Below are positions 17,599 to 50,656 of a stretch of 64,000 nucleotides of DNA, piece after piece (position 1 is the first letter of the stretch; each line of letters starts with the position of its first letter). A program made the translations under genes and the position numbers. Source of the stretch: Rebecca billardiae RCC1528 (Eukaryota; Protista; Haptophyta); the NCBI GenBank assembly GCA_965240325.2, contig OZ251224.1, positions 372,001-436,000 of the forward strand, given 5' to 3'. A model generated the notes under the pieces. That model saw nothing but the letters and a program-made list of their open reading frames with translations. It was not told where the DNA came from and searched no databases.

Positions 17599-19128
17599 AT
17601 GACCGCGTTCCGCGGTCCTCTTCCGTCAGAACCAACGTAGTTGGGGGCCCGCGGTGCAGCTGTGCCACCCGCTCCGTCACCGCCACGGCACGGCGTCGCC
17701 CGTCGCATATGCCACCTCGCTGCATCAGTCGCGCGGACTCATCCACTCGCCGCTGGCCGCGCAGATCTGAGCCTGTGGGCTTTCGTGTCAGGCAGTCAGG
17801 CATCCGTCGTGCCCATCAGCGCCCGAGAGCTGGCTCTCAGTCACTGAGTGAGTGAGAGCCGCCGCTCTAACAGCGCGCGGTCCGAGCTCGCGCGCCAAAC
17901 GCCCGCCCATGCGCCAGTCAAGCCGTCGAGACTCGAGACAGCTCGGATGCGGCGGACGAGAGCAAAATCCATCACAGCTCGGCCATGGACGGCGCGAGCG
18001 AGGGCTTGGGCGAGCGAGATGGCCGTGGTGGCTGCTCCACATCCCGACAAAACGTCCATCAGGCGAAGGCTCCGCACTGCAGATCAGGCTCGGCGCCAGA
18101 CGGCTGAGCCGGAACGTCCTCGCGAGGCCCCGCGCTTCAACACGCCGAGAATTCAGCTGCGCGGCGTGCGGCGTGGCGCGCGCGGGCGCGCGCATGGTCA
18201 GCTGGAAACACAGCGAGAAACTCGCCTCGCCCCCACGCGCCACGCGCATTCGCACCCATAATATCACACGCGAGGAGCATCGTCCGATGAGTGAAGCTAC
18301 TCGGCAGCTTCATTGGCACCGGTGAGTCAGCTCACGGCTGCGCAGTCAATAAACGATGAACTCGAGGGACACCCCATGCTGCTGTCACCTGCGGAGTAGG
18401 CCTGGATTCACGCGTTAGGATGCCCCGCGGTCTCCTCCTCGTACCGTCGCCGACCGCTCTCCGGCGCGCGGGCGTTGACATCGATTCGTCGGTCCGCCGG
18501 TCGTGCTCGGTTGGAAACCGCACTGACTGGGCCGAAGAGGGATCGGCAGGGCGGGGCGCGCGGGGTGAGCGGGGCACGAAAGCGACGCCGATGACCGTCG
18601 GGACCCGCCGCAGCCGCGCGCACCTGCGCTGAGTCCGTCGGATTGAACGCCTCGTGCGCAGCGCCGCCGGCGCGAGGCACCCCTCGGCTTGCTGAGTGAG
18701 CCCTTCTCAGCGGGCTCAAACCTACCGACCCGGTCGGGATCCGGCACAGGCGACGGGCGGCCAGGGAGATAGTATGAAGATTGCGTTGTGGTGGCGCGAT
18801 CAACATTTGATCATCAAACGTCGTCGCTCCTTGAATATCATTGGCCGAAAAATTCGCTTGTAACGGTTCGTTACGTTAGGGATCCTAAAGGGCGTGAAGT
18901 TTTTTGGACGGGCGTCACTCCACGCTTTACTATGAACTTGCCGTGGGCGCGACCTTTTTCGACGCTAATGCACCTGTAAGGGAGTCTCAAAATTCGAAAC
19001 TCGGTCTCCTCCAGCCATGAAAATCGTCCCCCGTCCCTTTTTTCTTGATCAAAGATCTTTTTGAAACGTTGTTCGGGCCCGCTGGTGCGGGCTCCACGCT
19101 GCGCGCTCCGCCCTGCACCGCGGGCCAT
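17599..19128 (-). mobile_element. Non-autonomous Helitron2/Helentron-like element, copy 1 (about 1.5 kb)
   Basis: Both ends are shared with the copies at 33156-36566 and 49371-50656. Terminal hairpin GACCGCG-TTC-CGCGGTC; asymmetric IR GGCCCGCGGTGCA at 17646-17658 and 19114-19126. Confidence 0.75.
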
Positions 19129-22527: not shown

Positions 22528-25500
22528 CGCGCGCGCGCGCGCGCGCGCGATCCGCCTCGCGCGCGCAGCTCGACCGGCGGCAGCTGTCGGGCGCTTCCCT
22601 GGGCGAGCTGCGGCTGGACCTGCCGCTGTACGCGCACACGCCCGTGGTCGACGCGCGCTGCGTGTGTGTCGCGCAGCTGGTGTTCAGCGTGCTGAGGCCG
22701 GGGCTGGAGGTGGGCGAGCAGAGCGGCGGCTGGGCGCTGCTGCCGCTCTTCGAGGGCGCGGCGCGGGCGCGGCAGCCCGCCGGCGCGGCGGTGCGCTCGG
22801 GCGCGCCGCCCGACGCCGGCGTCGGGCCCGACGCCCCCGCCGAGGCGCACGTGCCGTTGTACGACGGCTCCGCCGCCGCGCTGCTGCTCGCCGAAGGGCC
22901 GTACCCGTGGGGGGCGGCGGGCGGCGCGGCCGCGCCCTTCCGCGCGCTCGGCGGCGCGCGGCTGGCGTACTCGGTGCGCGCGCACCCGGTGCTGCTCGGG
23001 CCGGCGGGCTGCGCGCACCTCATGTCGCCGAGCGTACTCTACCCGGGCGAGCGCGCGCCGCCCGGCGTGCAGCAGGCGCCGGCCGCGCGCGCGCCCGCCT
23101 CCGGCGCTGCGCGCTCTGCGCTCGAGGCGCCGCGCCTCGCCAGCACGTTCGCGCTGGCGGTGGGCGTGGAGCTGCTCGTGCTGCCCGCGCAGCTGCTCGA
23201 GGCGCTCGGCGCGGCCGCGCGCGACGAGGCGCGCGCGCGCGCCGGCGGTGTCCCGCCCGGCTCGAGCTCTCGGCTCACGCTCGGCGCGCGCGGCGCGCGC
23301 TCGAGCGGAGCCGCGGCCGCGCCGGGCGCGGGCGCTGCCGGCGGCGGCGGCGGCGAGTGGACGGTGGGCTCGTACGCGCTGGCGCTGACGCTGCACAACG
23401 GGCACGTCGCGGTGGGCGAGCGCCGGCTGCTCGCGCTCGATGCGGAGCCGTACGACCCCGGCGGCGCCGCCGACGCCGCCGGCGCGTCGACGCGCGCGCA
23501 GCGGCGCGCGGGCGGCGCCGCCTCGGCTGCCGAGCGCGCTCCGAGCGCGCCCCGCCTGCTCGCGCTCACGCCGCGCGCGGGCGTGGACGACGGCGAGGTG
23601 GAGCTTCCCGGCGCGTTCGCGTCGAAGCACCTCGCCATCGCCTTCGAGCTGGAGGCCACGCTCACCCCGCCGCCGCCGCCGCCGGCCGACGCGGGCGCGG
23701 CGCGGCGCGGCGCGGCCGCTCCGGCGGCCGCGCCGCCCGCCGCGCCGCGCGCCGTCCTTCTGGCCGAGGGCCTTCTCGTGCCGTTCACGGGCGCGACGAT
23801 GCTGTGCGCGCACGGCACGCGCGTGCCGCTGGTGTTCGGCCCCGGCGTCAGCCGCTCCTCCTCGCGCGTGCTCGCCGCGCCCACCGCCGCCGCGGCGCGC
23901 GCCGCGCCCGCGCCCGCGCCGTCGGCCGTTGGACTTTTTGTGAGCGTCGGCCCTCGGGAGGTGCAGGCGTTTTCGCGCAGCCTGCCGGCGGTGCTGTCGA
24001 AGGAGAACGGAGTGCCGCCCGCGGAGGCGCAGGCCGTGGGCGCGCGCCTGCGCGCGGACGCCGCCACCGCGCGCGCCGACGCGCAGCGCGCCGCCGCGCC
24101 GCCGCCGGGCGGCGGCGGCGCGCGCGCCGATCGCTCGGCGGCGGCGTACGTCGCGCTCGGCGGCGGCCGCGTCGGCGCGCGCGCCGAGCCGCCGAGCTCG
24201 GAGGCGGAGCAGGCGGTGGCGACGCTGCAGCGCGCGTTCCGCGCGAAGCGCGGCGGCGGGGGCACGGCCGCGCAGTTCCGCGCGACGCGCGCGCGCGCGG
24301 GCGGGCTGATGCGCGCGTACACGGGCGAGCACGGCCGCGCGGCGTTTGGCGCGTGGCGCGAGCTCACGCGCGCGCTCGCGGCCGAGCGCGCGCGCACCTC
24401 CATCACGCTGCGCGCGCGCGACGTGACGCTGAGCGACGCGCTGGTGCCGTCGGCGGGGAGCGTGTACCTCGAGGCGGAGATCCCGACGCTCCGCTTCCCC
24501 GTGCGCTCCGCCCGCGTCCGCGCCGCGCGCGGCCCGCTCCCCCTCTCCTTCTCCGAGGAGGTCGCGCTGCTGGACGGCACGCGCCCGATGCGCGAGGCGA
24601 GCGCGGCGCTGGCGCGCGCCGACCCGTCGGAGCTCGACCTCGTGCTGCGGCTGTGCACGGCGCGCGGCGGGGCGGAGGGCGCGGGCGAGGCGCGCGGCGA
24701 GGCGCTCGTCTCGCTGTGGCAGCTCCTCCGCGCGCGCCGCGACGCCGTCGACCAGCACGTCCGCTTCGTCGACGGCGGCAGCGGGCGGCAGGTCGGCACG
24801 GCGCGGGTGTCCGTGGTGTGCGTGGCCGCGCTGCTGCGCGCGGCCGAGCACGCCGCTGCGGCCGTGCAGCCGGGCCTCGCGTCGGACCCGACGCTGGGCG
24901 CGCGGCTGCGCGGCGGCGCGCTCGAGCCGAGCACGCCGCTCACGCTCTCGCCCGCGCCCGGCCTCGCCGCCCCGTACGCCACCGCCGCCGGCCGCGCCGA
25001 GCTCGTCTCGCGCGCGCGCGAGCTCGACGCCTCGCGCGCCGCACCGCTCTCGCGCGCCGAGCGCGCACTCATCTGGGAGCTGCTGGAGGAGGGCGCGCGC
25101 CAGCCGGGGAGGTACGGGCCGGCGGAGGCGGGGACGCTGGGCGCGCTGGAGCACTGGTCGGAGGACGTGCGGCACGAGGTGCTCCTCCACTTCACCGCCT
25201 TCCTCCCGGCGCACTCGCAGCAGCAGCAGCGGCGCGCGGGCGCAGACGGCTCAGACGACGCGGCCGCGGCCGCGGACGAGGGCGCGGCGGGCGGGCCTGC
25301 GCGCGCGCCTCGCTCCGTGTACCTCACGCTGCAGTTCTACGACCACCAGCCGTGCACGACGCCGCGCGCGCTCGTCGCGCCCGCGGACGGCGCGGTGCCC
25401 GCCGCCGAGCTCGCGCGCCTCGGCGCCGCCGAGGCGCAGCCGCTACCGGCCGCGCTGCCGGCCGCGCGCGCAGGTGACGGGCTCCGGCCGAGCTCGGCCG

Positions 25501-28500
25501 CGGCGGTGGGCGGCGGCGTTGGCTATGTGGACGGCGCGACGGCGGCGCGCGCGGGGCAGGCCGCCGACCCGCTGCTCGCGCTCGCGACGGGCGGCGGAGG
25601 CGCCGCGCCCGCCGCGCAGCCGGCCGCCGACCCTTTGCTCGCGCTCGCCACCGGCGGAGGCGGAGGCGGCGGCGCGCCGCCCGCCGCCGCGTCCGCCGCC
25701 GACCCTTTGCTCGCGCTCGCCACCGGAGGCGGCGCGCAGCCCGGCGCGCCGCCGCCCGCCGACCCGCTGCTCGCGCTCGCCACCGGCGGCGGTGGCGGCG
25801 GCCCCGGCGCGCAGCCGGGCGCGGACCCGCTGCTCGCGCTCGCCACCGGCGGCGGTGGCGGCGCCGGCGCCGGCGCGGACCCGCTCCTCGCCGCGGCGAC
25901 CGGCGCGGCCGGCGCCGGCGCGCCCGCAGACCCGCTCGCGGACGAGGCGCGGCGCGCGCGCTCGGATCGGCTGCGCGCCGGCGGCGCGCCCGTGGCGGCG
26001 GCGGCGGCGGCGGCGCCGTCCGCCGCGGCGGCGGCGCTGATGCACGACAGCCGCGGCATGCGCGCGCCGCGCGGCGAGCGCGGCGCCGGCCTGCTCTGGG
26101 CGTACGACCGCTCGCGCGCGCGCGAGGGCGTGGGCCTGATGGTTCGTTTCACGGTCGAGCCGCCCGCGCCGCCGGACGCGGACGCGGAGGGCGCTCGCGA
26201 GTGGCGCGCGCGCGCCGCGCGCCGGTTCGCGGCGTACCTCGAGTCGCGCACGCTGTCGGTGGACGTGTGGGACGGGGACAGCCTGCTGCTGCTCGGCACG
26301 GCGCGCGTGCCCCTCGCGCCGCTGCTGCAGCCCGGCGCCTCCGAGCACGCGGGCTCGGCCGTGACCAAGCACTATGCGGCAGCGCACGTGCTCGCGTCCG
26401 CCTCGCTCCGCGCAGATGAGCCGCCGCCGCCCGCCGCGCGGCGCGCGGACGCGCGCGCCGCGCCGGTGGGCAGCGTGGGCACGCTGCAGCTGATGGCGGC
26501 GCGCGTCGCCACGCGCGTCGAGCCGCCGCCCCCGCCGCCCGGCGCCGCGCCCGACCCGAGCGCCGCCCACGCCGCCGCCGCCGCTGCCAAGGAGAATCGG
26601 CGGCCGCGCGGCGGCGGCTCCTCGCGCGCGCGCGCGGGCAACAAGGTGCGCGCGCGCGGCCTCGCGCAGGCCAAGTCGGGCGCGGGCGAGGCCGCGCGCG
26701 AGCTGCTCCGCTCGCGCGGGCTGGCGGACGAGGAGGGCGCGCTGCGCCGCGCGCTGCACCGCCAGCAGCGCCACGAGCGCCTCGGGCTCGCAGGCAGCGC
26801 GGGCGGCGTACGCGCGCGCACCGCGCCCGCGCACGGCGGCAATTTTGGCGGCGCGCCCGCGCGCGCGCCGCCCGCCACGGCCGCGGCGGGCGGCGCGGCG
26901 GACCCGCTGCTCGCGCTCGCCGGAGGCGGCGGCGCGCCGCCGCCCGCCACGCCCGCCGCGGCCGACCCGCTGCTCGCGCTCGCCACCGGCGGCGGCGCGC
27001 CGCCGGCCGGCACCGCCGCCGCCGCGTCCGCCGCCGACCCTTTGCTCGCGCTCGCCACCGGAGGCGGCACGCAGCCCGGCGCGCCGCCGCCCGCCGACCC
27101 GCTGCTCGCGCTCGCCACGGGCGGCGGCGGCGTGCCGCCCACGCCCGCCGCGCCGGGCGGCGCCGACCCGCTCCTCGCGCGCGCGCTCGCCGGCGGCGCG
27201 CCGGGCTCGACCGGCCCGGCCGCGGCCGACCCGATTGTGGCGAGCGCGCGCGCGCGGAAGCAGCAGCAGCAGCAGCAGCAGCAGCGCGGCGGCGCGCGCG
27301 GCTCCGCGGGCGAGGCGACGCCGTCGACGCGGCTCGCGCCGCACGACCCGGTGCGCGCGGCGGCGCACGCGCGCGTCTCGACGGGCCAGGCCGCGCTCGC
27401 CGTGCTCGCGGAGGCGCGCGCCTCCTCCAAAGCCGCGTCCATCTCCAGGCTGCTGCGCGCGGCCACCTCCTCCGTCGCGACCGTCTTCCCCTCGTATGGC
27501 AGCGCCGAGGTGTTCGAGCTGCGCTTCCGCAACCCGTACGCGGTGGAGCACGTGTTCGCGCTCGAGGTGGAGGACGCGGGGCTGGGGAGGGAGCCGGGCG
27601 GGCCGGCCGGCGGCGCGGCGCACGAGCTTCACCTGATCACCGACGGTGCCGAGCTGCGCGCGCACTACGCGGCCGGCCGGCTGAGTGTGCCCGCAGACGC
27701 GCAGATGCTGCTGGCCGCGTCGCGGCTCTTCTTGATGCCCGCGGAGGAGGTGGCGCTGCCCTTCAAGTTCCAGACGTGGCGCGCGGCACGGCACGCGGCG
27801 CCGCCGCCGGACGGCGCGAGCGGCGGCTCACACGTGCTCGGCGCGCTGCCCTCCGCTGACGAGCGCGCGCACATCGCGCCGCGCGACATCGCCGTGCGCG
27901 TGGCCAACGCGGCGGGCGAGGTGGTGCACGCGCTCACCGTCAAGGTGCGGCCGCAGCCGTTCGCCGTCTCGCAGACGTTCCGCTTCCACGCGGCGGAGGG
28001 CGAGATGCTGCGCGCGCGCGTGAAGGTGGGGCACGCGGGCGGCGGCGCGCTCGCCGCGGCGGAGACGCCGGTCGACGCGCACGCGCACGCCGCCACCTTT
28101 TGGGCGGAGGAGGCGGTGCGCGCGGACGGCGTTGGCGGCGCGCGGCGGCAGCACTGGTGCCGCTGCTCCGACCCCGACGTGGTGGTGGGCACGGAGGAGC
28201 CGGGCGGCGGCGCCGAGGGCGACGGCGGCGCCGGCCTCGAGCCGCCCGCCGTGTACATCAAGTACCGACCGGGCCGCGCGCCCGCCCTCCAGCGCTTCCT
28301 CGTCGCGCTCTACTCGGACGTGCACCTGACGGCGCTGCGCGAGGTGTGGGAGGTGTTTGTGCACGCGCACGCGCGAAGCGAGCTCACCGCCATCGTGGGC
28401 GAGCGCACGGCGGGGCAGCTGCTGCTCAAGGCGCCCGAGGGCATGGGCGCGGCCACGTGCGCGCGCGCGCGCCGCGCGAGCGCCGCGCGCGTGTGCGTGC

Positions 28501-29401
28501 GTGCGTGCGTGTGTGCGCCTGACGCGTGTCGGCCCGCCCCGCCGCGTGCCCGCGCGCCGCCTCCCGCCCGCGCCGCCGCGCCGCCGCGCGCCCGCGCCCG
28601 CCCGCCCGCGCCGGCAGTGTCGAGTGCTTCTCCTCCGACGAGCGCGTGCTCGCCTTCCCCGCGCAGCAGCCCACCACCCTCGTGCCGGGCAACCCGCGCG
28701 CGATGCCGTTCGTCGTGCGCCCGCCCCTCGCCACCGTCTCGCCGCGCACGGACGTGGTGGTGCACGCCGTGGACACCGCGCGCCGCGCGCTCATCGGTGC
28801 GCCGCGCCGCGCCGCGCGCGCGGCCACGCGCGAGCGCGCGCGCGGATGCGCGCGTTGCTCACGTGCGCTCGCCGCGCGCGCCGTGCGCGCCCTCCGCGCG
28901 CCAGGCTCCTACCTGGTGAGCATCCGCAACGTCGTCCCCGCGGTGAGCAAGTCGTACGACGTGACCGTCGAGATCGGCCGCGGCGCGAGCAAGGTGCAGC
29001 GCGCGCGCCCGCGCGCACCGCCCGCGCGCACCGCGCCGCGCCACCACGCGCGATGCGCGCTCACGCCCCGCCCGCGCGCGCCGCGCCCGCGCGCGCCGCG
29101 CCCGCAGCGCATCGCGCTGAGCAACCCGTACAAGGCGGAGCGGCTCTTCCGGCTGCACTCGTCGCGGCCCGACCTGCTCGCTTTCAAGCAGGAGACCCTC
29201 GCCGTGCCGGTGGGCGAGTTCCGGTACATCGGGCTCAAGTTCTCACCCGACCCGGCCATCAGCGCGGGCGTGGCCGACATCCTCGTGCTCGTCAACAACC
29301 GCGACGAGAAGAACGAGGAGGCCATGCTCGTGCGCGCGTCGTTCGTGCAGCCGGGAGGGCGCGGGGGCGTGGCGGCCGCCATGCTGGACGACGGCGAGTG
29401 A
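22006..29401 (+). CDS. NPHP4: Nephrocystin-4 (ciliary transition zone), multi-exon
   Basis: VYLTLQFY...TTPR, YLESRTLSVDVWDGDSLLLLG, FELRFRNPY, QTFRFH, SKSYDV..., SNPYKAERLFRLHSSRPDLL and ILVLVNNRDEKNEEA match NPHP4 blocks as I recall them. Introns include 22168-22302 and 22414-22568. Confidence 0.9.
22485..22527 (+). repeat. (GCCCAT)n microsatellite inside NPHP4 intron 2
   Basis: About 7 tandem hexamers followed by (GC)n. Confidence 0.9.
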
Positions 29402-29937
29402 GCGACTCTCCAATGGCCCAATGTGTCTGTGACTGTCCGGACGGCGATAACTCCGCGGCCGCGCGCCGCCACGCCCACGGCCCCCGGGTACGGGCGGCAC
29501 GGCGAATGCGCGGCGCCTGACTGACTCACTAGTCACTGACTGCCCGACCTGTTCGGACGGCGCGGACACGTATATACTGTTATACGTGTCTGCTGCACTC
29601 GGCCCGGTGTAATTCGGCTGCCCGTTGCATGTAGTCACGGGGCACTACGCGGCGCATTAGTTATCAGATACTCACTACTCAGACTACATGCGCACCGCAG
29701 TACAAACAACATCACTCGTCCGATCAGCATGATACCTGTGACCGTTGTGGGCTGGCCAGGGTAGGGCTGGAGGCTTCGGCCGCCAGCCTGATCACCCGGA
29801 GCCCGTTATGGCCCGCGGTGCAGGGCGGAGCGCGTAGCGTGGAGCCCCGCCGGGGGCCCTCACTACGTTGTCAAAAAGATCTTTTGATCAAAGAAAAGGG
29901 GACGGGGGACGATTTTGAGGGCTGTTGGAGGGTGAGT

Positions 29938-30198
29938 CGGCTCTTCCGGCTGCACTCGTCGCGGCCCGACCTGCTCGCTTTCAAGCAGGAGACCCTCGCC
30001 GTGCCGGTGGGCGAGTTCCGGTACATCGGGCTCAAGTTCTCACCCGACCCGGCCATCAGCGCGGGCGTGGCCGACATCCTCGTGCTCGTCAACAACCGCG
30101 ACGAGAAGAACGAGGAGGCCATGCTCGTGCGCGCGTCGTTCGTGCAGCCGGGAGGGCGCGGGGGCGTGGCGGCCGCCATGCTGGACGACGGCGAGTGA
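29938..30198 (+). pseudogene. Duplicated last 86 codons of NPHP4 (copy 1)
   Basis: Matches 29141-29401; fused directly behind 130 bp of transposon end. Confidence 0.9.
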
Positions 30199-31611
30199 GC
30201 GACTCTCCAATGGCCCAATGTGTCTGTGACTGTCCGGACGGCGATAACTCCGCGGCCGCGCGCCGCCACGCCCACGGCCCCCGGGTACGGGCGGCACGGC
30301 GAATGCGCGGCGCCTGACTGACTCACTAGTCACTGACTGCCCGACCTGTTCGGACGGCGCGGACACGTATATACTGTTATACGTGTCTGCTGCACTCGGC
30401 CCGGTGTAATTCGGCTGCCCGTTGCATGTAGTCACGGGGCACTACGCGGCGCATTAGTTATCAGATACTCACTACTCAGACTACATGCGCACCGTCAGTA
30501 CAAACAACATCACTCGTCCGATCAGCATGATACCTGTGACCGTTGTGGGCTGGCCAGGGTAGGGCTGGAGGCTTCGGCCGCCAGCCTGATCACCCGGAGC
30601 CCGTTATGGCCCGCGGTGCAGGGCGGAGCGCGTAGCGTGGAGCCCCGCCGGGGGCCCTCACTACGTTGTCAAAAAGATCTTTTGATCAAAGAAAAGGGGA
30701 CGGGGGACGATTTTGAGGGCTGTTGGAGGGTGAGTTTTCGCTTTTTCGAGGGGTACATTGGCCCATTGCTTTGCATTAGCAAGACTCGATTGACGAAATA
30801 GCCGCGCCCGCTCCAATTCCATATCTACGGACGGACGTGAGCCTGTGGACGTGCATTTGTCAGTATATGATCTGGGGGCACTACGCGGCGCATTAGTTAT
30901 CAGATACTCACTACTCAGACTACATGCGCACCGCAGTACAAACAACATCACTCGTCCGATCAGCATGATACCTGTGACCGTTGTGGGCTGGCCAGGGTAG
31001 GGCTGGAGGCTTCGGCCGCCAGCCTGATCACCCGGAGCCCGTTATGGCCCGCGGTGCAGGGCGGAGCGCGTAGCGTGGAGCCCCGCCGGGGGCCCTCACT
31101 ACGTTGTCAAAAAGATCTTTTGATCAAAGAAAAGGGGACGGGGGACGATTTTGAGGGCTGTTGGAGGGTGAGTTTTCGCTTTTTCGAGGGGTACATTGGC
31201 CCATTGCTTTGCATTAGCAAGACTCGATTGACGAAATAGCCGCGCCCGCTCCAATTCCATATCTACGGACGGACGTGAGCCTGTGGACGTGCATTTGTCA
31301 GTATATGATCTGGGGGCACTACGCGGCGCATTAGTTATCAGATACTCACTACTCAGACTACATGCGCACCGCAGTACAAACAACATCACTCGTCCGATCA
31401 GCATGATACCTGTGACCGTTGTGGGCTGGCCAGGGTAGGGCTGGAGGCTTCGGCCGCCAGCCTGATCACCCGGAGCCCGTTATGGCCCGCGGTGCAGGGC
31501 GGAGCGCGTAGCGTGGAGCCCCGCCGGGGGCCCTCACTACGTTGTCAAAAAGATCTTTTGATCAAAGAAAAGGGGACGGGGGACGATTTTGAGGGCTGTT
31601 GGAGGGTGAGT

Positions 31612-31872
31612 CGGCTCTTCCGGCTGCACTCGTCGCGGCCCGACCTGCTCGCTTTCAAGCAGGAGACCCTCGCCGTGCCGGTGGGCGAGTTCCGGTACAT
31701 CGGGCTCAAGTTCTCACCCGACCCGGCCATCAGCGCGGGCGTGGCCGACATCCTCGTGCTCGTCAACAACCGCGACGAGAAGAACGAGGAGGCCATGCTC
31801 GTGCGCGCGTCGTTCGTGCAGCCGGGAGGGCGCGGGGGCGTGGCGGCCGCCATGCTGGACGACGGCGAGTGA
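31612..31872 (+). pseudogene. Duplicated last 86 codons of NPHP4 (copy 2)
   Basis: Matches 29141-29401. Confidence 0.9.
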
Positions 31873-33155
31873 GCGACTCTCCAATGGCCCAATGTGTCTG
31901 TGACTGTCCGGACGGCGATAACTCCGCGGCCGCGCGCCGCCACGCCCACGGCCCCCGGGTACGGGCGGCACGGCGAATGCGCGGCGCCTGACTGACTCAC
32001 TAGTCACTGACTGCCCGACCTGTTCGGACGGCGCGGACACGTATATACTGTTATACGTGTCTGCTGCACTCGGCCCGGTGTAATTCGGCTGCCCGTTGCA
32101 TGTAGTCACGGGGCACTACGCGGCGCATTAGTTATCAGATACTCACTACTCAGACTACATGCGCACCGTCAGTACAAACAACATCACTCGTCCGATCAGC
32201 ATGATACCCGTGACCGTTGTGGGCTGGCCAGGGTAGGGCTGGAGGCTTCGGCCGCCAGCCTGATCACCCGGAGCCCGTTATGGCCCGCGGTGCAGGGCGG
32301 AGCGCGTAGCGTGGAGCCCCGCCGGGGGCCCTCACTACGTTGTCAAAAAGATCTTTTGATCAAAGAAAAGGGGACGGGGGACGATTTTGAGGGCTGTTGG
32401 AGGGTGAGTTTTCGCTTTTTCGAGGGGTACATTGGCCCATTGCTTTGCATTAGCAAGACTCGATTGACGAAATAGCCGCGCCCGCTCCAATTCCATATCT
32501 ACGGACGGACGTGAGCCTGTGGACGTGCATTTGTCAGTATATGATCTGGGGGCACTACGCGGCGCATTAGTTATCAGATACTCACTACTCAGACTACATG
32601 CGCACCGCAGTACAAACAACATCACTCGTCCGATCAGCATGATACCTGTGACCGTTGTGGGCTGGCCAGGGTAGGGCTGGAGGCTTCGGCCGCCAGCCTG
32701 ATCACCCGGAGCCCGTTATGGCCCGCGGTGCAGGGCGGAGCGCGTAGCGTGGAGCCCCGCCGGGGGCCCTCACTACGTTGTCAAAAAGATCTTTTGATCA
32801 AAGAAAAGGGGACGGGGGACGATTTTGAGGGCTGTTGGAGGGTGAGTTTTCGCTTTTTCGAGGGGTACATTGGCCCATTGCTTTGCATTAGCAAGACTCG
32901 ATTGACGAAATAGCCGCGCCCGCTCCAATTCCATATCTACGGACGGACGTGAGCCTGTGGACGTGCATTTGTCAGTATATGATCTGGGGGCACTACGCGG
33001 CGCATTAGTTATCAGATACTCACTACTCAGACTACATGCGCACCGCAGTACAAACAACATCACTCGTCCGATCAGCATGATACCTGTGACCGTTGTGGGC
33101 TGGCCAGGGTAGGGCTGGAGGCTTCGGCCGCCAGCCTGATCACCCGGAGCCCGTT

Positions 33156-36100
33156 ATGGCCCGCGGTGCAGGGCGGAGCGCGTAGCGTGGAGCCCCGCCG
33201 GGGGCCCTCACTACGTTGTCAAAAAGATCTTTTGATCAAAGAAAAGGGGACGGGGGACGATTTTGAGGGCTGTTGGAGGGTGAGTTTTCGCTTTTTCGAG
33301 GGGTACATTGGCCCATTGCTTTGCATTAGCAAGACTCGATTGACGAAATAGCCGCGCCCGCTCCAATTCCATATCTACGGACGGACGTGAGCCTGTGGAC
33401 GTGCATTTGTCAGTATATGATCTGGGTGAACGAATCTGCGATTTGTTGTAAATCTTCATACGACCATAATGTTGCCAAATAGGACGAGGACCCAAGCGCA
33501 TGCGATGGAGGTCCTGGGCTCCGGCCTGGCAAAAAGTCTCGTCAAGTACTCAACTTTACTAACGACGAACCTTTGCGCGCTGCCAAATTACTCAACTTTA
33601 CTAACGACGAACCTTTGCGCGCTGCCAAATGGGACGAGACCCAAGCGCAGTGATGCATGGAGGTCCTAACAAAAATCCGTCAAGTACTCAACTTTATTTA
33701 CTGACGACGAACCTTTGCGCTCCCGGCGAGTATGATGCGTCGCATCCGATTACCGATTGGCCGAGTCTGAACTATGACGAACGGCACCCGGTATTGGATG
33801 GCGGCCCGAGGGCCGAGGCCGAACACAGCGCAGGTTTTTTACCCGGGCGCGGGCTCTGCCCGCGCGGGCGCGTTCGTCGCTCGAGGAGGAGCGCGCAAGG
33901 GCGAGCCGAGTCCGGAGCACTACGCGTAAGCTCGTTCGTTGCTAGTAGGGGGTCCAAGCCAGCAGCCCACTGATTTGTGATATTTGACAACCATGCCATG
34001 TAGGCGTCTGCTGAGCGTGGCGCTTGCGGAGTCACCCTCAAATATGCCCCACAGCCCAGCCCAGCCGTCAGAAGCACTAAAAACCGACTCCGCGTGTCGT
34101 CGCGCGGTCGTGCGCGCGCGCAGCGGCGCCCGCTGTGTCACATAGAGATTCAGCCGAATGTTACCTACTTGTTATTGCAGCTAGATGACGATACGCGGTC
34201 GGACTTACCTATTGACAAGCGCTGCCCCCTATCCGAAGGATTTTATGGTGAAAATACCGAAAAAGTGGGGCACTATGCTGTGCGCGTAGACGTCCATGAA
34301 AAACTACTCCAAGATCGAGCACATTACCCATTTAATTATAGGAATTTACCCGCGTATAAGAGCATGTTTACCCACTTTATATCAAATGTGGTTACTTTTA
34401 TAATATGTATTCAAGTACGTGCCTATACATGGGTACCTTGCTCACTATTTGCTGGGTCATCCGAATACGGAATACGGCGGCGCCGAGACGGCTCATGCTG
34501 CCACTGGACTCACATCAGTGAGCGCCGGCCCGCGAACGCGGGCCTGATGCCGGTGGCGGGCTGCACGTGCTGCGGCACACGGCCAACTCCGCCACTGAAC
34601 ATGCCACCATCCCCGTATGAGAGGCCTCTCCGCCGTCGAGGCTGGCGTGCGCAGACTAGCTCGCCATGTGTGGCGGCTTCCTTGCCGGTCTCAGGTGTCA
34701 CCGGCACCGTCGCCGTTCGTCGTACACCAGCCCACGCGAGGCCGCCACCGGTCCACCTCGGCTGCGGCTACAGCGCCTGCAGTCGAGGGTGCTCCATGTT
34801 ACCTCTGACTCGGCGAGCTGCTCGGTGGCGAGCGTTGAGCTCTCTGCCTCCGCTGCCGCGCCCAGCGCGCACGCCTGCCCCGAGCACCATGCAGTCTGCA
34901 CGCTGCTCCAAGACGGCCGCCAACAGTGGCGGCGGCACTCCCGAGACGAAGACACGGTGTACAGATGTGGCAGCGGCCATAGCGGCGCTTGGCGGCGCGC
35001 GTCTGCTCCGCAGCAAGCTTGACGTTCGTGACAAGGTGCACGCTCTTCGCCTCAGGGCAGCTCGGCTGCTGCATGCAGCCAAGCGGCACGCCAAGTGGCA
35101 CAACAAACAAGCCGACGCGTGCCGGCTGGAGCTTCTGGCGGTACTACTGTGGGCTGGAAGATAGGCCCCGCACGTACACAGGGTCGCCGAGCTTGCTTAC
35201 CACCCACGACTGCCGCGCGCTCCCGTTTGCGCACGAGCGGCCAGCGATCGCGCGAGTGCATGCGCAGCGCGTGGGGAGGTGAGCACTGCACGCACCGGGC
35301 CAAGCGCCGGGGGCTGACTCATTCTCCTCATGAGCTGATGGAACCAGTAGGGAACCAGGGCGCAGCGTGCACGGTTCACCTGGAACCGGGGCTGCGTTGT
35401 CCGCGCTCATCCGGATGAGAGTTCGAACGGCGCGCAGAGCGGGGCTGTGAGGTTCAAGATGTCCGGTGAGAGCGAGCTGCCAGCGATCATTTGGCCGAAC
35501 GCTGCCATGGTGGGCACCCTGACTCGCCCGCCCGCGCGCCTCTGACGCCAGAGCGCGCTCCGCCGCGCCGACGCGACGATGAAGTCCACCGCCCAGGCGT
35601 GCTGCTCGCCCGATCTCGGGCTCGACCGTGCTCTGAACGGCCGCGGCCCGTGCTGCCGCAATTCGAGGCCAAAATGTTCAGAAATGCTCAGCGCGAAATC
35701 GGTCAGTCGATTTTCGATTTTAAATTCCGCGGCTTGGACCCCCTATTGCTAGAGGAGGAGCGCGCCGCGAGCACGCAACGGATGCGCCCGGAGCTAGCGC
35801 GGCTGAAGGGCGAGCTCGAGCACGCGAGCTCGCTCCTCGTGACGTCGAGCGCGAGCTCCTCCTTAGCAACTCGGTCGACGGCGGCGTGGAGGTGCCGAGC
35901 AGCGTGAGTGAGGACGAGCAGGAGCAGTGACAGTCGTGGAACGCGCGCCGGTTCCCGTTCGGTCGCGCAGCCGGGCGCCCAGCTGACTCGGGCCGTGCAT
36001 CGGAGCACGTGCGCGCGCAGGCGCTGGGCGCCGAGCTGGCCCGGAAGCGCGGCGCCGAGCTCGACGCGCTGCGCCGTGCGCGACGCGGCGACGGACGCGC

Positions 36101-36566
36101 TGGGCGCGCGCGGCGCCCTCGTCGCGACGCCCCCGGTGCAGCAGCTCGAGCAGCCAGCTGTGGAGTAGACGGCCGTCGACTCGAGGGCGCCACCGCGCCG
36201 GGTGAGTGAGCACGCACGGGCTCAGCCTCGGTCGGCTGGCTGGCCGCCGCTGCTTATTCGAGGCCGACGCGGCGGAGGAGGCTGGAGGCGGCGGGCGAGC
36301 ACGGTGCCGGTGGCGCGGTGGAGCAGGCGCGCACGCGCGGCGGCAGGCGCGACCCGCCGCTCGCCTCGTTCCACCCCGAGCTCCGCGCTCGGTCTCGCCT
36401 CTGGGTGCGCGGCTGCGCAGCGCCGTGAGTGAGCGCACGGGCCCGGGGGGCGGGGCCGCAGCAGTGGCGCGCGCTCTCGCCGTCTGCCGGCACGAGGCGC
36501 AACGGAGGGTGCACCGCGGGCCTCTAACTACGTTGGTTCTACGGAAGGACCGCGGAACGCGGTCAT
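33156..36566 (+). mobile_element. Non-autonomous Helitron2/Helentron-like element, copy 2 (about 3.4 kb)
   Basis: Starts ATGGCCCGCGGTGCA; inverted copy TGCACCGCGGGCC at 36510-36522; terminal hairpin at 36548-36564; no recognisable transposase. Confidence 0.75.
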
Positions 36567-36788
36567 AAAGGGGAATTTTAAAACACACTACACAGTTCCG
36601 ATGTAAAGTACTTTATGACTATGGCACTATGCGCTCAAGCTATGCAGTATTCGTCGTCGTGGCTGACTTGATGCTGATTAAAAGGCGTATCGCGTCCATA
36701 TATTCACTGATGTGCAATATTGTGCATCCACCGCCGCGGCGCCGACCCCCGCTGGCGCTGCGCTTTGGCCTTCGCTTTCCTGCGCAGC

Positions 36789-39426: not shown

Positions 39427-39634
39427 TCTTGTCACCGCACCGCCCAGTTTTTGTCGTCGTCAGTTTGTGCGCGCTTGCGGCGGGACGCGAGCTCTTTTCC
39501 GGCCGGGGCCGCCAGCTGGATTTGGATTATAATTATTGATACCCGCACTGCTTCGGCCACTCGTGCTCGACGATTTCTGGCAGGCACGCGTCCGTCATTC
39601 GCGCCGACGCCGTCGGCGTCGCGTCGGCCTCGAG

Positions 39635-41116
39635 ATGGGCTTCGGGCACACGGCGAGCACGAGCAACCTGAGTAGCGTCGAGCAGGCGCCACCGCGTGGC
39701 CTTGTCGCCGCGCTGCTCTTCATCGCCGTGATGGTCAATCAGGTGCGCAGGCTCCGCCGTGGCATGCGCGGCACGCGCCGGCCGCGGCCGTTTGCCGCGC
39801 GCGCGGCCGACGTGTGCGCCACTCCGCCTGGCGCGCGCGCGCGCGCCCGCTCGCAGGTGTCCCGGGTGATGATTCCATCGCTCCTCTCGACGATCAAGGA
39901 GGACCCCGCGTTCGGCACGGCCGCGGACGGGAAGGCGGCGATCGCGTCTGCGCTGCCGACGATCCTGCCGATCACATCGATGACATGCCTGTTCGGCAAG
40001 CTGGCCCTCGGCACGGCGACGGACCGGCTGGGCGGCTCGTTCATCCTGATCATCGTCTTTGCGCTCTTCGCCTCCTCCTCCGCCGGGCTCATCCTCACCA
40101 GCGACGTGCACGTGTTTGGCGGGATGTGGGTGCTCAACTCGCTCGCGTACACGGCCACGTGGGGCGCGGCGACGCAGGTGATCCACGCGGCGTTCCCGAA
40201 GGAGGAGTGGCCGGTGCAGCTGAGCTCGATCGCGTCGGCGGGGCGGCTCGGCGCCGCGGCGGGCGCCATCATCTACGGCTTCCTCCTCCAGCAGGGCCTC
40301 ACCTGGCGGCGCGTGTTTGTGGTGCCGACGCTCGTGCAGCTGGCGCTGATCGGGATGTGCGTGTGGCAGCACGCGACCGTGAGGCGCATGCAGCAGCTCT
40401 CCTCGGCCAAGGACGAGGCCGCGCTCGCGGGCGCGAAGGCCGCCGCCGCCTCCGCCGCCGCGCGCCCCGCCGCCCCGCCCGACGACGCCGCCGGCCCGTC
40501 GGTGCTCTCGCTCGTCTGCTCGGTCGACTTTGGCCTGATGTTTGCCGCCAAGGCGGGCCTCTTCGTGTTCACGCAGTGGTTCATGAACTTCGTGGGGATC
40601 TACCTGCGCTCGCAGTTCGGGTACTCGCTGCCCGCCTCGACGAACGCCATCTCCGTCGCCAACGCGGGGCAGATGATCGGCCTGCTCTTCGGCGGCAAGC
40701 TGTACAAGTCGCTCGCGCCGCGCACGCAGGCGGCCGCCATCGCCGCGTGCCTGGTCGTCACGACGGCTGTGCCCGCGCTGCTGCTCGCGCGCAGCTACGT
40801 GCCCGGCGTGGACGTGCTCGTGCTGCCGCTCCTCTTCGCGTGGGGGCTGTGCTTCTCCGTCCCCTTCTATCTCCCCGCGGGCACCTTCGCGCTCGAGCTC
40901 GGTGGCAAGCGCAACGGCGCCCTCTTCACCAACCTGTTCGACGCGGGCGGCTTCACCGCGTGCTCGGCGTGGAACCGGTACGCGGCCGCGCACAGCGCCA
41001 ACGACCGCTTCGACGAGGTGCTGCTCACGCTGGTGACGCTGGGCGGGCTCGCGCTGTGCACGATGCCCGCGTGCATGCTGCGCCGAGCGCCCGCTGGCCG
41101 GCACAAGGCCGAGTAG
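39635..41116 (+). CDS. Major facilitator superfamily transporter, 2 exons (in-frame intron 39743-39856)
   Basis: About 12 TM segments in a 6+6 arrangement; motif A-like GKLALGTATDRLGG. Confidence 0.85.
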   Translation: MGFGHTASTSNLSSVEQAPPRGLVAALLFIAVMVNQVRRLRRGMRGTRRPRPFAARAADVCATPPGARARARSQVSRVMIPSLLSTIKEDPAFGTAADGKAAIASALPTILPITSMTCLFGKLALGTATDRLGGSFILIIVFALFASSSAGLILTSDVHVFGGMWVLNSLAYTATWGAATQVIHAAFPKEEWPVQLSSIASAGRLGAAAGAIIYGFLLQQGLTWRRVFVVPTLVQLALIGMCVWQHATVRRMQQLSSAKDEAALAGAKAAAASAAARPAAPPDDAAGPSVLSLVCSVDFGLMFAAKAGLFVFTQWFMNFVGIYLRSQFGYSLPASTNAISVANAGQMIGLLFGGKLYKSLAPRTQAAAIAACLVVTTAVPALLLARSYVPGVDVLVLPLLFAWGLCFSVPFYLPAGTFALELGGKRNGALFTNLFDAGGFTACSAWNRYAAAHSANDRFDEVLLTLVTLGGLALCTMPACMLRRAPAGRHKAE

Positions 41117-42442: not shown

Positions 42443-44404
42443 TCAGTGCATCATAACATCAGCCGACGACGAAAGCCACGGCGACGAAAAACCAGCCGCT
42501 GCTGGTGCCTGCGGCTGCACTTGCAGTTGCCGTTGGGAGTCAGGTTCGTCGTGCGTGGCAGCCGCAGTAGTGGCACCAGCGCTGGAGCCTGCCGCTGCGG
42601 GCTGCGCATGTCCAACATGCGCCACGGCAGAGCCGTGCTGATGATTTCTGCTCGCAGCTGCGTCGCCAGTATCTCCTGCTGTGGCCGCTGCTGCGGATGG
42701 TGCAGGGTCACGGGCCCGGACGCGCCGCACGAGCTCGAGCGCGTCCGCAAGGTCGCGAATGTCCACGCCTGCTTGGGCCGCAGCAACCTCGATGCCCCAC
42801 TGTGCACTGCTGCCACCGCCGTGTGCACCTGGCTTGTCCGCTGGCTCGGCGCTGACCACGCCGTCTGCGCCCACGCCAATGCTGGGCACTACCTGAGCAC
42901 CCGGGTCGGGCGGAGGCTTGCCCGAGCCGCCCGTGCGACCGTCGACCGCCCACGTGAGCAGCGCAATCAGTACGAGCGCAACGTGCAGGCAGACGATGCC
43001 GCTCATCACGCCCGCGCCGAGCTCGTCCGCGGAGTCCTCGGCGGCGGCGCATTGGACCGTGCCGGCGCGCGCGCGGAAGTCGTCGTAGATTCGGCGCAGG
43101 TCCTCCGCCGCGTCGAGCGAGAGCGCGTGCAGCGACCCCTTCACCAGCGCGGAGCACGTGCGGCCGCCAAAGTCGCCGCGCACCGCCCAGCCGGCCTCCG
43201 CGTAGTCGAGCCGCGGGCCGAGCGCAGTCAGCGTGCAGTCTGCGTTGGCCGTGCCATGGAGCGCGAGCTCGAGCTCGGCGCTATCACCGAGCGCGACGCG
43301 GCACCCAGCGCTCGCCATCTGCTCGAATGGCGACCCGTCGGTGCGCACCAGCTTGGCGGTGGGGTAGAAGTGCCGCATGAACTCCTCGCCGTCCGCGTTG
43401 TCCCAGACGCACACCTTGGCGCCCGCGCCCACCGCCTCCTCGAGCGAGGCGTAGTCGGTCTGCAGCGCGGAGTCGATCACCAGCAGCTTGGTGAGGTGCG
43501 CTGTGTACGCCGCGACGATGAGCATCGCCGCGGTCGACCAGCTCAGCGCGACCAGCTTCCCCGCGCGCGTGGCCGGCGCGAGCGCGCCCTGCGTCGCCAC
43601 ATGGTGCGAGGCCTGGTACAGGGAGGTCTGGAGGGAGGCCACAAACGGGTGAGCGCCCCCGCCCGCCGAGCGCGAGCCGCGCAGGTGGGCGGACTCGAAG
43701 ACGGCGTAGAGTAGCGCGGTGCCGACCACGAGCGAGACGATGCACAGCCACGCGCCGCGCGTGAAAGGAAGCAGGATCAGCATCAGCTCGTGCCGCAGCG
43801 ACACGTCCCGCCGGCGCTGGCCCCGCGTCGCCGCGACGAGGCTCGCATCCCACACGCGGAAGGCAGAGAGGACACTCAGCCACGCGCGCTCCTTAGTGCC
43901 GGCGAAGGCGCCGAGCACGAGGTCGTATCGCATCAGCGTGTGGTCGAGCCACTGCGTCGCCGACATGTTCGCCGGCCGCGGCGGCATGAGCGTGAGCTGG
44001 TAGCCGAAGCTGCCGCGCTCGGCGAGCAGCGCGAGCATCTCGATGTGCATGCCGCTCCACGCGCCGGTCACGGGGTCGAAGTCGGCGAGCATCGGCTCGG
44101 ACGGGTGTTCGACCGCGGCGTGTACCGTCCGGCCGGCGAGCGCGCGGCCCAGCGCGACCAGCTCGCTCTCAGGGCTACCAGCGGCCGCGCTTCCTCGCCC
44201 ATCGAGCTGCAGTGAGAGCGCGTCCGCCTCCGCGCAGAAGACGTTGCGGTGGTCGAGGCCGTCGTCGTACAGCGCTGGGCGCGGTCGAGCAGCGCGTAGC
44301 GGAGCTACTGGTAGGGAGACGTGATGGTCTCGCGCAGCGTCGGTGCTGCCCGCGTGTGCGGCCAAAATGAGCACCGTCCACAGTGGTGCCGCCCAGGCCG
44401 CCAT
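42443..44404 (-). CDS. Ionotropic glutamate receptor-like channel without an amino-terminal domain
   Basis: Signal peptide, S1, M1 (LLPFTRGAWLCI), pore segment ATQG, M3 AAYTAHLTKLL (SYTANL-like), S2 and M4. Confidence 0.85.
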   Translation of the reverse strand: MAAWAAPLWTVLILAAHAGSTDAARDHHVSLPVAPLRAARPRPALYDDGLDHRNVFCAEADALSLQLDGRGSAAAGSPESELVALGRALAGRTVHAAVEHPSEPMLADFDPVTGAWSGMHIEMLALLAERGSFGYQLTLMPPRPANMSATQWLDHTLMRYDLVLGAFAGTKERAWLSVLSAFRVWDASLVAATRGQRRRDVSLRHELMLILLPFTRGAWLCIVSLVVGTALLYAVFESAHLRGSRSAGGGAHPFVASLQTSLYQASHHVATQGALAPATRAGKLVALSWSTAAMLIVAAYTAHLTKLLVIDSALQTDYASLEEAVGAGAKVCVWDNADGEEFMRHFYPTAKLVRTDGSPFEQMASAGCRVALGDSAELELALHGTANADCTLTALGPRLDYAEAGWAVRGDFGGRTCSALVKGSLHALSLDAAEDLRRIYDDFRARAGTVQCAAAEDSADELGAGVMSGIVCLHVALVLIALLTWAVDGRTGGSGKPPPDPGAQVVPSIGVGADGVVSAEPADKPGAHGGGSSAQWGIEVAAAQAGVDIRDLADALELVRRVRARDPAPSAAAATAGDTGDAAASRNHQHGSAVAHVGHAQPAAAGSSAGATTAAATHDEPDSQRQLQVQPQAPAAAGFSSPWLSSSADVMMH

Positions 44405-44765
44405 TTCGGTGCGCGCGAAAATGAATATTAAGCGCGGCGGCGAGAAGGCCACAATGGCGGCCGATTCTTTTTCCTACAGCGTACATTCGTGGCGGCGCAC
44501 CGCGGAATGTGCCCGTCGCCGAGCCGAGTTTCCTGGGGACACGCCGCACAGCCGGCGTGTCTGCAGAGGAATGTCCCCGGCGCGTTCGGAGGAGAGCTCC
44601 GCCCGTCAAGGGTCGGGGTGCGGAGCGGCTGGAAGCTGCATGCCGTGCCCCGCGCGCACAGCCACAGGCATACTCGGAACCGCCGCGCAGGCGGTCAACA
44701 GAACGGGGCTACTCCGGCGGCGAGCTTCTTGATGGCAGCTAGACAGCGCGAAGCCTCCAGGCCGG

Positions 44766-49370: not shown

Positions 49371-50656
49371 ATGACCGCGTTCCGCGGTCCTTTTCTGCAT
49401 AGAATCAACGCAGTTGGGGGCCCGCGGTGGCCGTGCAATCGCGGCTCTCCGCCGTAGTGGCAGTTCGCCAGTTGAAGTCGGTTCTGAGATGACTGAAGCT
49501 ATTAGTCCGACCGTCGCCCTGCCTGCGCGACCGCGAGACTCATTCACACTTCACACAATCACAGCAGCGGACCTGAGACCGCACCCGGCACCGGTCGTCA
49601 AATCGGACGTCCGTCTGACAACTAGCTGCCAAATGTCCAACTGGCTGATCAGCTCGGATCCGACCCGTCCGCGATCGTGCCATCGGCATCGGAATTACTA
49701 CTAGTAGCTGCCAAACTGTGTCCAACTCTGGCTGATCAATCAGCTCGGATCCGACCCGTCCGCGATCGTGCCGAGTGAGTCGTGCCGCGGAGCTCGGAGT
49801 ACTGAAGGAGTCGGGTGTGACAGCAGGGTGCTTTAGCGCTGCGGCCCGTGCCAGCCAACGACCAGACGTACTCTGGCCACTTGACCCGTTGCACGGGTGA
49901 GTGACCGTACGCCCTGCCTAGTGCCTACCGCGCGCGCCGCGCGACCGGCGACTCGGGGTGATGGAGAGCGGATGGCGACAGCAGCAGCAGTCCTCATGAA
50001 GACGATGAAACTGGCGGCACGGGTGCACGAGGTGGCAGGCGAAAGCGCGCCGACGAGACCGCATTTGACACACCTGAGCCGCACGCGCGTGCCGTCGCCG
50101 AGCGGCGAGCGCTGCAAACGCGCAACCGTACCGCGCGCGCCACGACGGCGCGGCACTAGCTGATGCAGGCCGTACTGCCGGCACTGCTTCTGCGATCATG
50201 CGCCACGGTCGCAGCTGACTGCGTGAGCAGCAAGCGGGAGGCGGGTCCGGAGGCACGTGCAGGCGCCGTCCGGCATATCCGCCATCGCCCATCGTGCCGG
50301 GGCACGTCACCGGCGACGATCCGGATGTGGCCCAGTCCGGACGTCACGCGATCCGGGAAGATGAGTACGATTCGCTCGTAACGAACCGTTACACTAAAGT
50401 CACGGCCAGGCTCACGTCCCGTCCATCGATTACTTATGGAATCAGCTGGGCGCGCTCTTTTTCGGCCTAATAGACCTCTCTATGCGATCTCAAAAACTCG
50501 AAACTCGGTCTCCGCCAGCCCTAAAAATCGCCCCCCGTCCCTTTTTTTCCGCCGCCCCCCGTCCCTTTTTTCTTGATCAAAGATCTTTTTGAAACGTGGT
50601 TCGGGCCCGCTGGTGCGGGCTCCACGCTGCGCGCTCCGCCCTGCACCGCGGGCCAT
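49371..50656 (-). mobile_element. Non-autonomous Helitron2/Helentron-like element, copy 3 (about 1.3 kb)
   Basis: Same ends as 17599-19128 (ATGACCGCGTTCCGCGGTCC ... TGCACCGCGGGCCAT); different interior. Confidence 0.75.

Follow-up and report, generated by a model that had tools for sequence, protein, structure and literature searches.

Helitron2 transposons are defined by having a terminal inverted repeat that is asymmetric, combined with a hairpin, the 3' repeat lying 20-40 bp before the end and the hairpins having GAA loops (PMC5148889). Helitrons in general insert into AT or TT targets without duplicating them, and Replitrons carry short direct terminal repeats at both ends (PMC10288648). 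Tandem repeats of transposable elements expand by unequal exchange (PMC5932611). Single-ended breaks derived from nicks lead to short tandem duplications through allelic synthesis, premature release and microhomology-guided re-invasion, mostly within 500 bp, and leave the break site without a scar (PMC12309385). Here we analyse a window of 64,000 nucleotides from the haptophyte Rebecca billardiae RCC1528 (contig OZ251224.1, positions 372,001 to 436,000, or C5:372001-436000 in the 72-Mb, 41-contig assembly); positions given without a contig or locus refer to this window. It contains a Helitron2-type element downstream of an NPHP4-like (nephrocystin-4) gene, and in the assembly the start of the element is repeated together with the tail of the gene in an array of 4.3 kb. 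Taken as a whole, this array is probably best explained by known processes of duplication and unequal exchange.

Seven identical element starts were found at 29809, 30607, 31045, 31483, 32281, 32719 and 33157, with start-to-start spacings of 798, 438, 438, 798, 438 and 438 bp. A repeat finder, Tandem Repeats Finder (TRF) and offset matching identified them as seven in-register copies, so that long units (A) and short units (B) follow each other in the order A-B-B-A-B-B before the full element. The parts are as follows.

29141-29808, forward strand: original flank segment of 668 bp that is copied in the A units (87 codons, stop codon and about 407 bp downstream)
29809-29937, forward strand: element 5' end copy 1, bases 1-129, ending at junction A (base-level tracing)
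29938-30606, forward strand: long flank copy 2, 669 bp, with an extra T at 30495 (offset matching, base-level tracing)
30607-30876, forward strand: element 5' end copy 2, bases 1-270, ending at junction B with the GG overlap at 30875-30876 (base-level tracing)
30877-31044, forward strand: short flank copy, equal to 29641-29808 (repeat finder, offset matching)
31045-31314, forward strand: element 5' end copy 3, bases 1-270
31315-31482, forward strand: short flank copy
31483-31611, forward strand: element 5' end copy 4, bases 1-129, again ending at junction A
31612-32280, forward strand: long flank copy 3, with the extra T at 32169 and a private C at 32209
32281-32550, forward strand: element 5' end copy 5, bases 1-270
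32551-32718, forward strand: short flank copy
32719-32988, forward strand: element 5' end copy 6, bases 1-270
32989-33156, forward strand: short flank copy directly 5' of the full element
33157-36565, forward strand: complete non-autonomous element of the Helitron2 type ('L type'); its uninterrupted copies measure 1,574 bp, and it is 96-98% identical to 11 others

Novel joins in the array are of two types only, A (twice) and B (four times). Base-level tracing showed that type A joins element base 129 to flank position 29141 with 0 nt of overlap and that type B joins element base 270 to flank position 29639-29641 with a 2-nt GG overlap. Unit A consists of 129 nt of element and 668 nt of flank (plus the extra T), and unit B of 270 nt of element and 168 nt of flank. 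An earlier reading of the same letters, referred to here as the original prediction, had described every unit as straddling the junction between element and flank and had given the order of units as above. Both descriptions were confirmed by the intact terminus in each unit, by the spacings and by a period of 1,674 bp. Its unit sizes of 798 and 438 bp also hold, but its division into element and host was off by one base, as the element begins with TGGCCC at 29809 and not at 29808. It had further proposed 2-3 nt of microhomology at the junctions (GG, and GAG offset by one base), which is correct in respect of there being only two junction types and of the GG at B but not of A.

Offset matching followed the 1,674-bp period across 29639-33285 with a single mismatch, T at 30535 versus C at 32209. 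The extra T is present in both long copies, where it causes the shift between 797 and 798, and neither the original nor any short copy has it (offset matching and base-level tracing). This T and the one private single-nucleotide polymorphism had both been predicted. Since the T is common to both long copies and absent elsewhere, it predates the last step, the doubling of the block. The prediction that A formed first and the 1,674-bp block was then duplicated is thus upheld as far as the long unit predates the block duplication, and A before B is one of the possible orders. These copy differences also bear on the concern that the array, in reality shorter or just one junction, was over-expanded by the assembler. 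Assembly errors classically occur where tandem units are nearly identical. Nevertheless, we consider such an artefact very improbable, given that a 4.3-kb array is shorter than typical long reads in an assembly of 41 contigs and 72 Mb, that the copies differ in a structured way (a non-homopolymer T in exactly two long copies, one private polymorphism) and that both novel junction sequences must exist in the reads.

The part order itself indicates how the array could have grown. The exchange that turns A-B-B-full into A-B-B-A-B-B-full follows directly from it, and ordinary unequal homologous exchange suffices for the block duplication, in which no new junction arises. With only two non-homologous junctions, the minimum path comprises two duplications and two homologous exchanges. 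The array looks much younger than the insertion of the element, unless it has been homogenised, because its units are at least 99.9% identical to one another and the element is 96-98% identical to its relatives. The prediction that a satellite is being born here is supported in so far as the array is a very young higher-order tandem repeat.

We propose the following history. A Helitron2-type element first inserted between the A and the T of a copy of a repeat that we call R65, downstream of the NPHP4-like gene. Much later, and very recently, replication-coupled repair would have made two non-homologous junctions that span the intact boundary between flank and element. A 3' end at or near this boundary may have used the sister chromatid as template for 129 or 270 nt of the element, after which synthesis would have been released and re-primed 668 or 170 nt behind, giving the long (A) and the short (B) tandem duplication. 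Such a process would be a case of allelic break-induced replication with subsequent template switching, or of an equivalent end-joining of a stalled fork. A (29141 to element base 129) and B (29639 to element base 270) may have arisen in either order or in one multi-switch event, and the extra T may have been introduced by mistake in the repair synthesis behind A. One unequal homologous exchange would have given the second B, and a second one, between the first and the fourth copy of a 297-bp segment of short flank plus element bases 1-129, would have doubled the 1,674-bp A-B-B block. The leading candidate for a trigger would be a nick by RepHel at the Helitron 5' cleavage site, with a fork stall at the GC-rich structured end as an alternative. 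The outcome would be a higher-order tandem repeat in its nascent state, offering seven potential start sites for the Helitron.

Several points weigh against this history. The evidence for the copy number, and even for the existence of the array, is the assembly, and A and B could have come in either order and from one multi-switch event or two. Gene conversion might have made the units of an older array alike, so that 'very recent' is an upper-identity argument only. No autonomous partner turned up; the ends at the five RepHel loci that were examined are different. Finally, the sole pointer to a trigger at the terminus is that two junction pairs bracket one point.

A different route to the same parts would lead through an extrachromosomal circle of 438 bp (and one of 798 bp) that was end-joined across the junction, amplified by rolling-circle replication and re-integrated by homology. 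Each unit class has one junction type and the units are perfectly identical, as such a circle would predict, and Helitron-family elements do form circles, which are held to explain tandem truncated copies (PMC5148889). However, the circle junctions would not be joined Helitron ends, and the interleaved A-B-B-A-B-B order with a T found only in A fits stepwise exchange better than a concatemer. We therefore regard the circle route as improbable.

The original prediction had instead invoked repeated nicking, taken here as the work of the transposase, with re-replication or end-bypass making each unit and the element thereby capturing a gene fragment. The terminus is intact in every unit, and Helitrons are known to capture flanking DNA by bypassing an end (PMC5148889). 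End-bypass, however, is a matter of the 3' terminus and proceeds downstream from it; the array sits upstream of the 5' terminus and has no breakpoint at the terminus itself. Nor would seven independent events reuse two identical junctions, and nothing points to a separate nick for each unit. Gene-fragment capture in the transposon sense has not taken place either. The segment 29141-29743 is unique to this locus genome-wide, no filled junction of flank and element was found elsewhere in the genome, and a search for mobilised copies of the units in the genome returned none. The array units are not mobilised, and we give this version very little credence.

The element itself is a non-autonomous Helitron2-type rolling-circle transposon. 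Its 5' end is TGGCCCGCGGTGCA, preceded by A in all but two of about 45 aligned copies, and its 3' end is ...GGACCGCGGAACGCGGTCA, followed by T in almost all of them. The asymmetric terminal inverted repeat consists of GGCCCGCGGTGCA at the 5' end and, about 42-54 nt short of the 3' end, its inverse complement TGCACCGCGGGCC at 36511-36523; copies of a second type, the S type, have CACCGCGGGCC in place of TGCACCGCGGGCC. The last 18 nt form the 3' hairpin GACCGCG-GAA-CGCGGTC, with a 7-bp stem and a GAA loop, plus the final A ending at 36565. This stem is present in every predicted structure, and a predicted 5' hairpin is not significant (z = -1.6). We assign the element to the Helitron2 type because the asymmetric terminal inverted repeat and the GAA-loop hairpin fit the published definition (PMC5148889). 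A Replitron was rejected, as the ends consist of an inverse repeat and a hairpin and have no direct repeats. The terminal motifs of the family are TGGCCCGCGG at the 5' end and GGTCA at the 3' end; genome-wide there are 1,122 5' ends and 1,053 3' ends, and reversed-pattern controls gave 0. Internal tandem duplications are common to subsets of copies (271 bp in L023 and L031, 421-422 bp in L014 and L048, 238 bp in L003), and the duplicated variants must therefore have transposed themselves.

The target of the insertion could be reconstructed from the repeat in which the element lies.

29744-29808, forward strand: left half of the roughly 80-bp high-copy repeat R65, the target of the element (at least 45 scored copies at 98%)
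36566-36582, forward strand: right half of the R65 target repeat, TAAAGGGGAATTTTAAA (empty-site comparison)

The last 65 bp of apparent host sequence before the element are thus part of a high-copy repeat and not unique host DNA. Intact R65 copies at L006:1190-1270 and, on the reverse strand, L043:7176-7256 read ...GAGCCCGTTA directly followed by TAAAGGGGAATTT. The empty-site 24-mer, GGAGCCCGTTA directly followed by TAAAGGGGAATTT, has 379 genomic copies, and its reversed control has 0. As the flanks of the window element are contiguous in these 379 undisturbed copies, insertion took place between A and T and duplicated no target sequence. The empty site and the flanks of about 45 copies led us to reject a 3-bp TTA target duplication of the PIF/Harbinger type. 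The R65-type dispersed repeat (...GGGCTGGAGGCTTCGGCCGCCAGCC...CCCGTTATAAAGGGGAATTTAAA) has at least 379 copies, often paired 140-330 bp apart. Other copies reach further 5', and the copy in the window looks 5'-truncated; the repeat could be a MITE or the tail of a SINE or LINE. Four R65 core copies at an exact spacing of 2,184 bp in C5:2830404-2836979 suggest another tandem array on the kb scale.

The involvement of the transposase in triggering the array deserves separate consideration, as it would extend the best explanation rather than oppose it. RepHel would nick the top strand at the boundary between flank and TGGCCC, and a fork arriving from the gene side would convert the nick into a single-ended break with its 3' end at 29808. 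Break-induced replication, premature release and upstream re-invasion would then make A and B, and Helitron 5' termini would be natural 'nickase' hot spots for tandem duplication. The same intact cleavage site lies within both founding duplications, and their geometry fits that of nickase-induced duplications (PMC12309385), but the array's own breakpoints lie away from the terminus and the array appears much younger than the insertion.

Other ends of the family were surveyed as well. We took the first 100 listed 5' ends as an unbiased 7-Mb sample, scanned three 31-nt spacing windows genome-wide for close end pairs and inspected about 90 ends for flank-spanning cases. Two of the 100 ends have a close same-strand duplicate, neither of which carries flank, and the genome-wide scan yielded three loci besides the present array.

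L048 (C3:671602-674718): 5'-end tandem duplication, unit of about 100 bp, preceding base T
L049 (C17:1540141-1543266): 5'-end tandem duplication, 109-bp unit, preceding base T
L050 (C1:956522-959973): 5'-end tandem duplication, 435-bp unit, 100% identical, TG filler, preceding base G

In each of the three, element base 1 is exactly where the second copy begins; the filler amounts to 0-2 nt, and no flank is included. The preceding base is T, T or G and not the usual A, which argues that these are not ordinary insertions. Nested self-insertion as their source is disfavoured, as the rule of insertion between A and T is broken and only one 3' end lies nearby. By our own arithmetic, the chance that a random left breakpoint falls within about 3 nt of base 1 at three of three loci is about 2e-5. 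Duplications of this kind are candidate footprints of cleavage at the 5' terminus. At the opposite end, a 257-bp tandem duplication at L026:2711-3231 (C7, about 1723.9 kb) runs across the 3' cleavage site of an S-type hairpin end and 176 nt of flank and leaves two identical 3' ends. These cases indicate that termini are preferred breakpoints in this Helitron2 family, which supports real cleavage-linked instability. In respect of arrays at the same end of other members, which the original prediction had proposed to look for, 5'-end duplications do exist, but they start at base 1 without flank, and flank-carrying arrays like the present one look rare in this limited sampling.

The same survey also provides the arguments against a trigger by the transposase: only 2 close duplicates among the first 100 ends, none with flank; only three other loci from three genome-wide spacing windows; and one flank-spanning case (L026) per about 90 ends, a frequency compatible with background tandem duplication. 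In addition, the matching autonomous element was not found. RepHel (PF14214) occurs at five loci, with open frames of 2,606-3,640 amino acids. Neither Helitron end motif was present within about 10 kb of these five loci, other partners not having been searched for, and the five were rejected as partners of the element, as their ends differ. Overall, a link of the array to Helitron nicking is plausible, and the full sequence of events from a RepHel nick to A and B is possible but doubtful. The more general proposal is that the 5' cleavage site is a natural, sequence-specific nick hot spot. It would leave one of two footprints depending on fork direction, either a duplication starting at base 1 or a scarless duplication spanning the terminus with flank, as in the present array, and would give rise to stacked start sites and a route of 5' capture; we consider this rather unlikely. 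The RepHel loci (L033-L047 on C7, C13, C23, C33 and C39) include copies on C7, C13 and C33 that are 99.8-99.95% identical over 8.3 kb. Further repeats lie beside them: L038 has a 111-bp satellite that extends over at least 6.4 kb, L039 an array of 114-bp units, and L045:4783-7295 an array of six 416-bp units.

Three further elements of the window belong to, or lie within, this Helitron2 group.

17600-19127, reverse strand: third copy of the Helitron2 group, upstream of the NPHP4-like gene
about 33945-35745, no strand assigned: nested, unrelated 1.8-kb terminal inverted repeat (TIR) transposon inside the Helitron copy, with the TIR AGGGGGTCCAAGCC and a flanking TTGCTAG duplication
49372-50655, reverse strand: 1.3-kb S-type copy of the same Helitron2 group (genome search), the source of an illusory 17.5-kb element

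The nested TIR transposon is non-coding and has at least 10 other copies at 96-100% identity, of which the one in L031 likewise sits within a Helitron copy. A 40-nt inverted match within the window, 29808-29847 versus 50617-50656, gives the appearance of a single 17.5-kb cut-and-paste TIR transposon. In a whole-genome search with this span, the repeated parts were only 33157-36565 (with the nested 1.8-kb repeat) and 49372-50655, which are separate copies in opposite orientation, and the 17.5-kb transposon was rejected in favour of two Helitron copies with host genes between them. The open reading frames (ORFs) at 39536-41116 on the forward strand (MFS_1 match, 1.7e-14) and at 42443-44452 on the reverse strand (Lig_chan match, 4.6e-07, just under the cut-off) lie between the two copies and are ordinary host genes, not cargo.

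The gene next to the array is probably NPHP4, judging from language-model look-alikes.

29108-29401, forward strand: probable last coding exon of the NPHP4-like gene, stop codon at 29399-29401; an acceptor-like cag ends at 29107 (splice site judged by eye)

For this piece the nearest atlas cluster is Ig_NPHP4_4th (score 0.94, 201 shared features), and for the upstream ORF at 24000-28916 nephrocystin-4 clusters are nearest (score 0.85, 202 shared features). The exon and the upstream ORF were searched as separate pieces and never joined. A Pfam search of the pieces gave no match, the library used being one without NPHP4 models (PF26187). The original prediction had named the gene NPHP4, an identity that the look-alikes of two separate pieces make probable without proving it. 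Unit A begins 33 nt inside the probable last coding exon, about 407 bp separate the stop codon from the insertion site of the element downstream, and the intact copy of the gene is untouched by the array. The array holds two extra copies of the last 87 codons and 3' flank of the gene, which are unlikely to be spliced because the upstream acceptor is absent from them. The region 28459-29117, directly 5' of the last exon, is very GC-rich, of (GC)n-like low complexity and probably intron sequence. Window G+C is 56-83% per 2 kb, and between 22 and 29 kb long open frames on all strands make ORF calls unreliable.

The locus offers a base-resolved snapshot of the birth of a higher-order tandem repeat, in which homology-driven doubling came after two non-homologous junctions and the steps can be ordered by a shared indel. 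If the link to Helitron nicking is true, the array would be a testable in vivo footprint of RepHel cleavage and would point to a mechanism for the capture of upstream gene fragments outside current end-bypass models. Should the 5' terminus indeed be a nick hot spot, functional start sites stacked above one stop site could lead to 5' capture and to the seeding of satellites. For the present, its value is that of a good teaching example and of a candidate marker for differences in copy number between strains; it adds one more example to known kinds and does not constitute a new kind of system.

Among known systems, the element shares with Helitron2 non-autonomous Helitrons, whose relatives are the Helentron-derived HINE/DINE-1 elements, the asymmetric terminal inverted repeat and the 3' GAA-loop hairpin. 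Orientation-specific insertion between A and T in AT-rich spots without target duplication, high copy number, frequent internal tandem repeats and head-to-tail stacking (GGTCA directly followed by TGGCCC in L023 and L030) are further common features. Unlike the published Helitron2 and Helentron elements with their TT-type targets (PMC5148889), it uses an A/T target as canonical Helitrons do. It differs further in that an autonomous copy with these ends was not found (five RepHel loci examined) and in that the array straddles the 5' boundary of the element instead of lying inside it. Its founding junctions resemble nick-derived microhomology duplications (PMC12309385) in spanning a scarless site, in overlaps of 0-2 nt, in re-invasion within a few hundred bp and in a possible frameshift error. 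That system, however, consists of mouse cells and a Cas9 nickase, whereas here the organism is another one and the nick hypothetical. In its growth the array is like nascent satellites derived from transposable elements (PMC5932611) and like tandem truncated Helitrons (cited in PMC5148889), as a unit containing a transposable element has been multiplied head to tail and has then grown by homology into a young array with a higher-order period. Unlike such arrays, which are founded by double insertions or rolling-circle multimers of the element itself, the present one has units composed partly of gene-tail flank and partly of element start, and its founding events would be non-homologous duplications.

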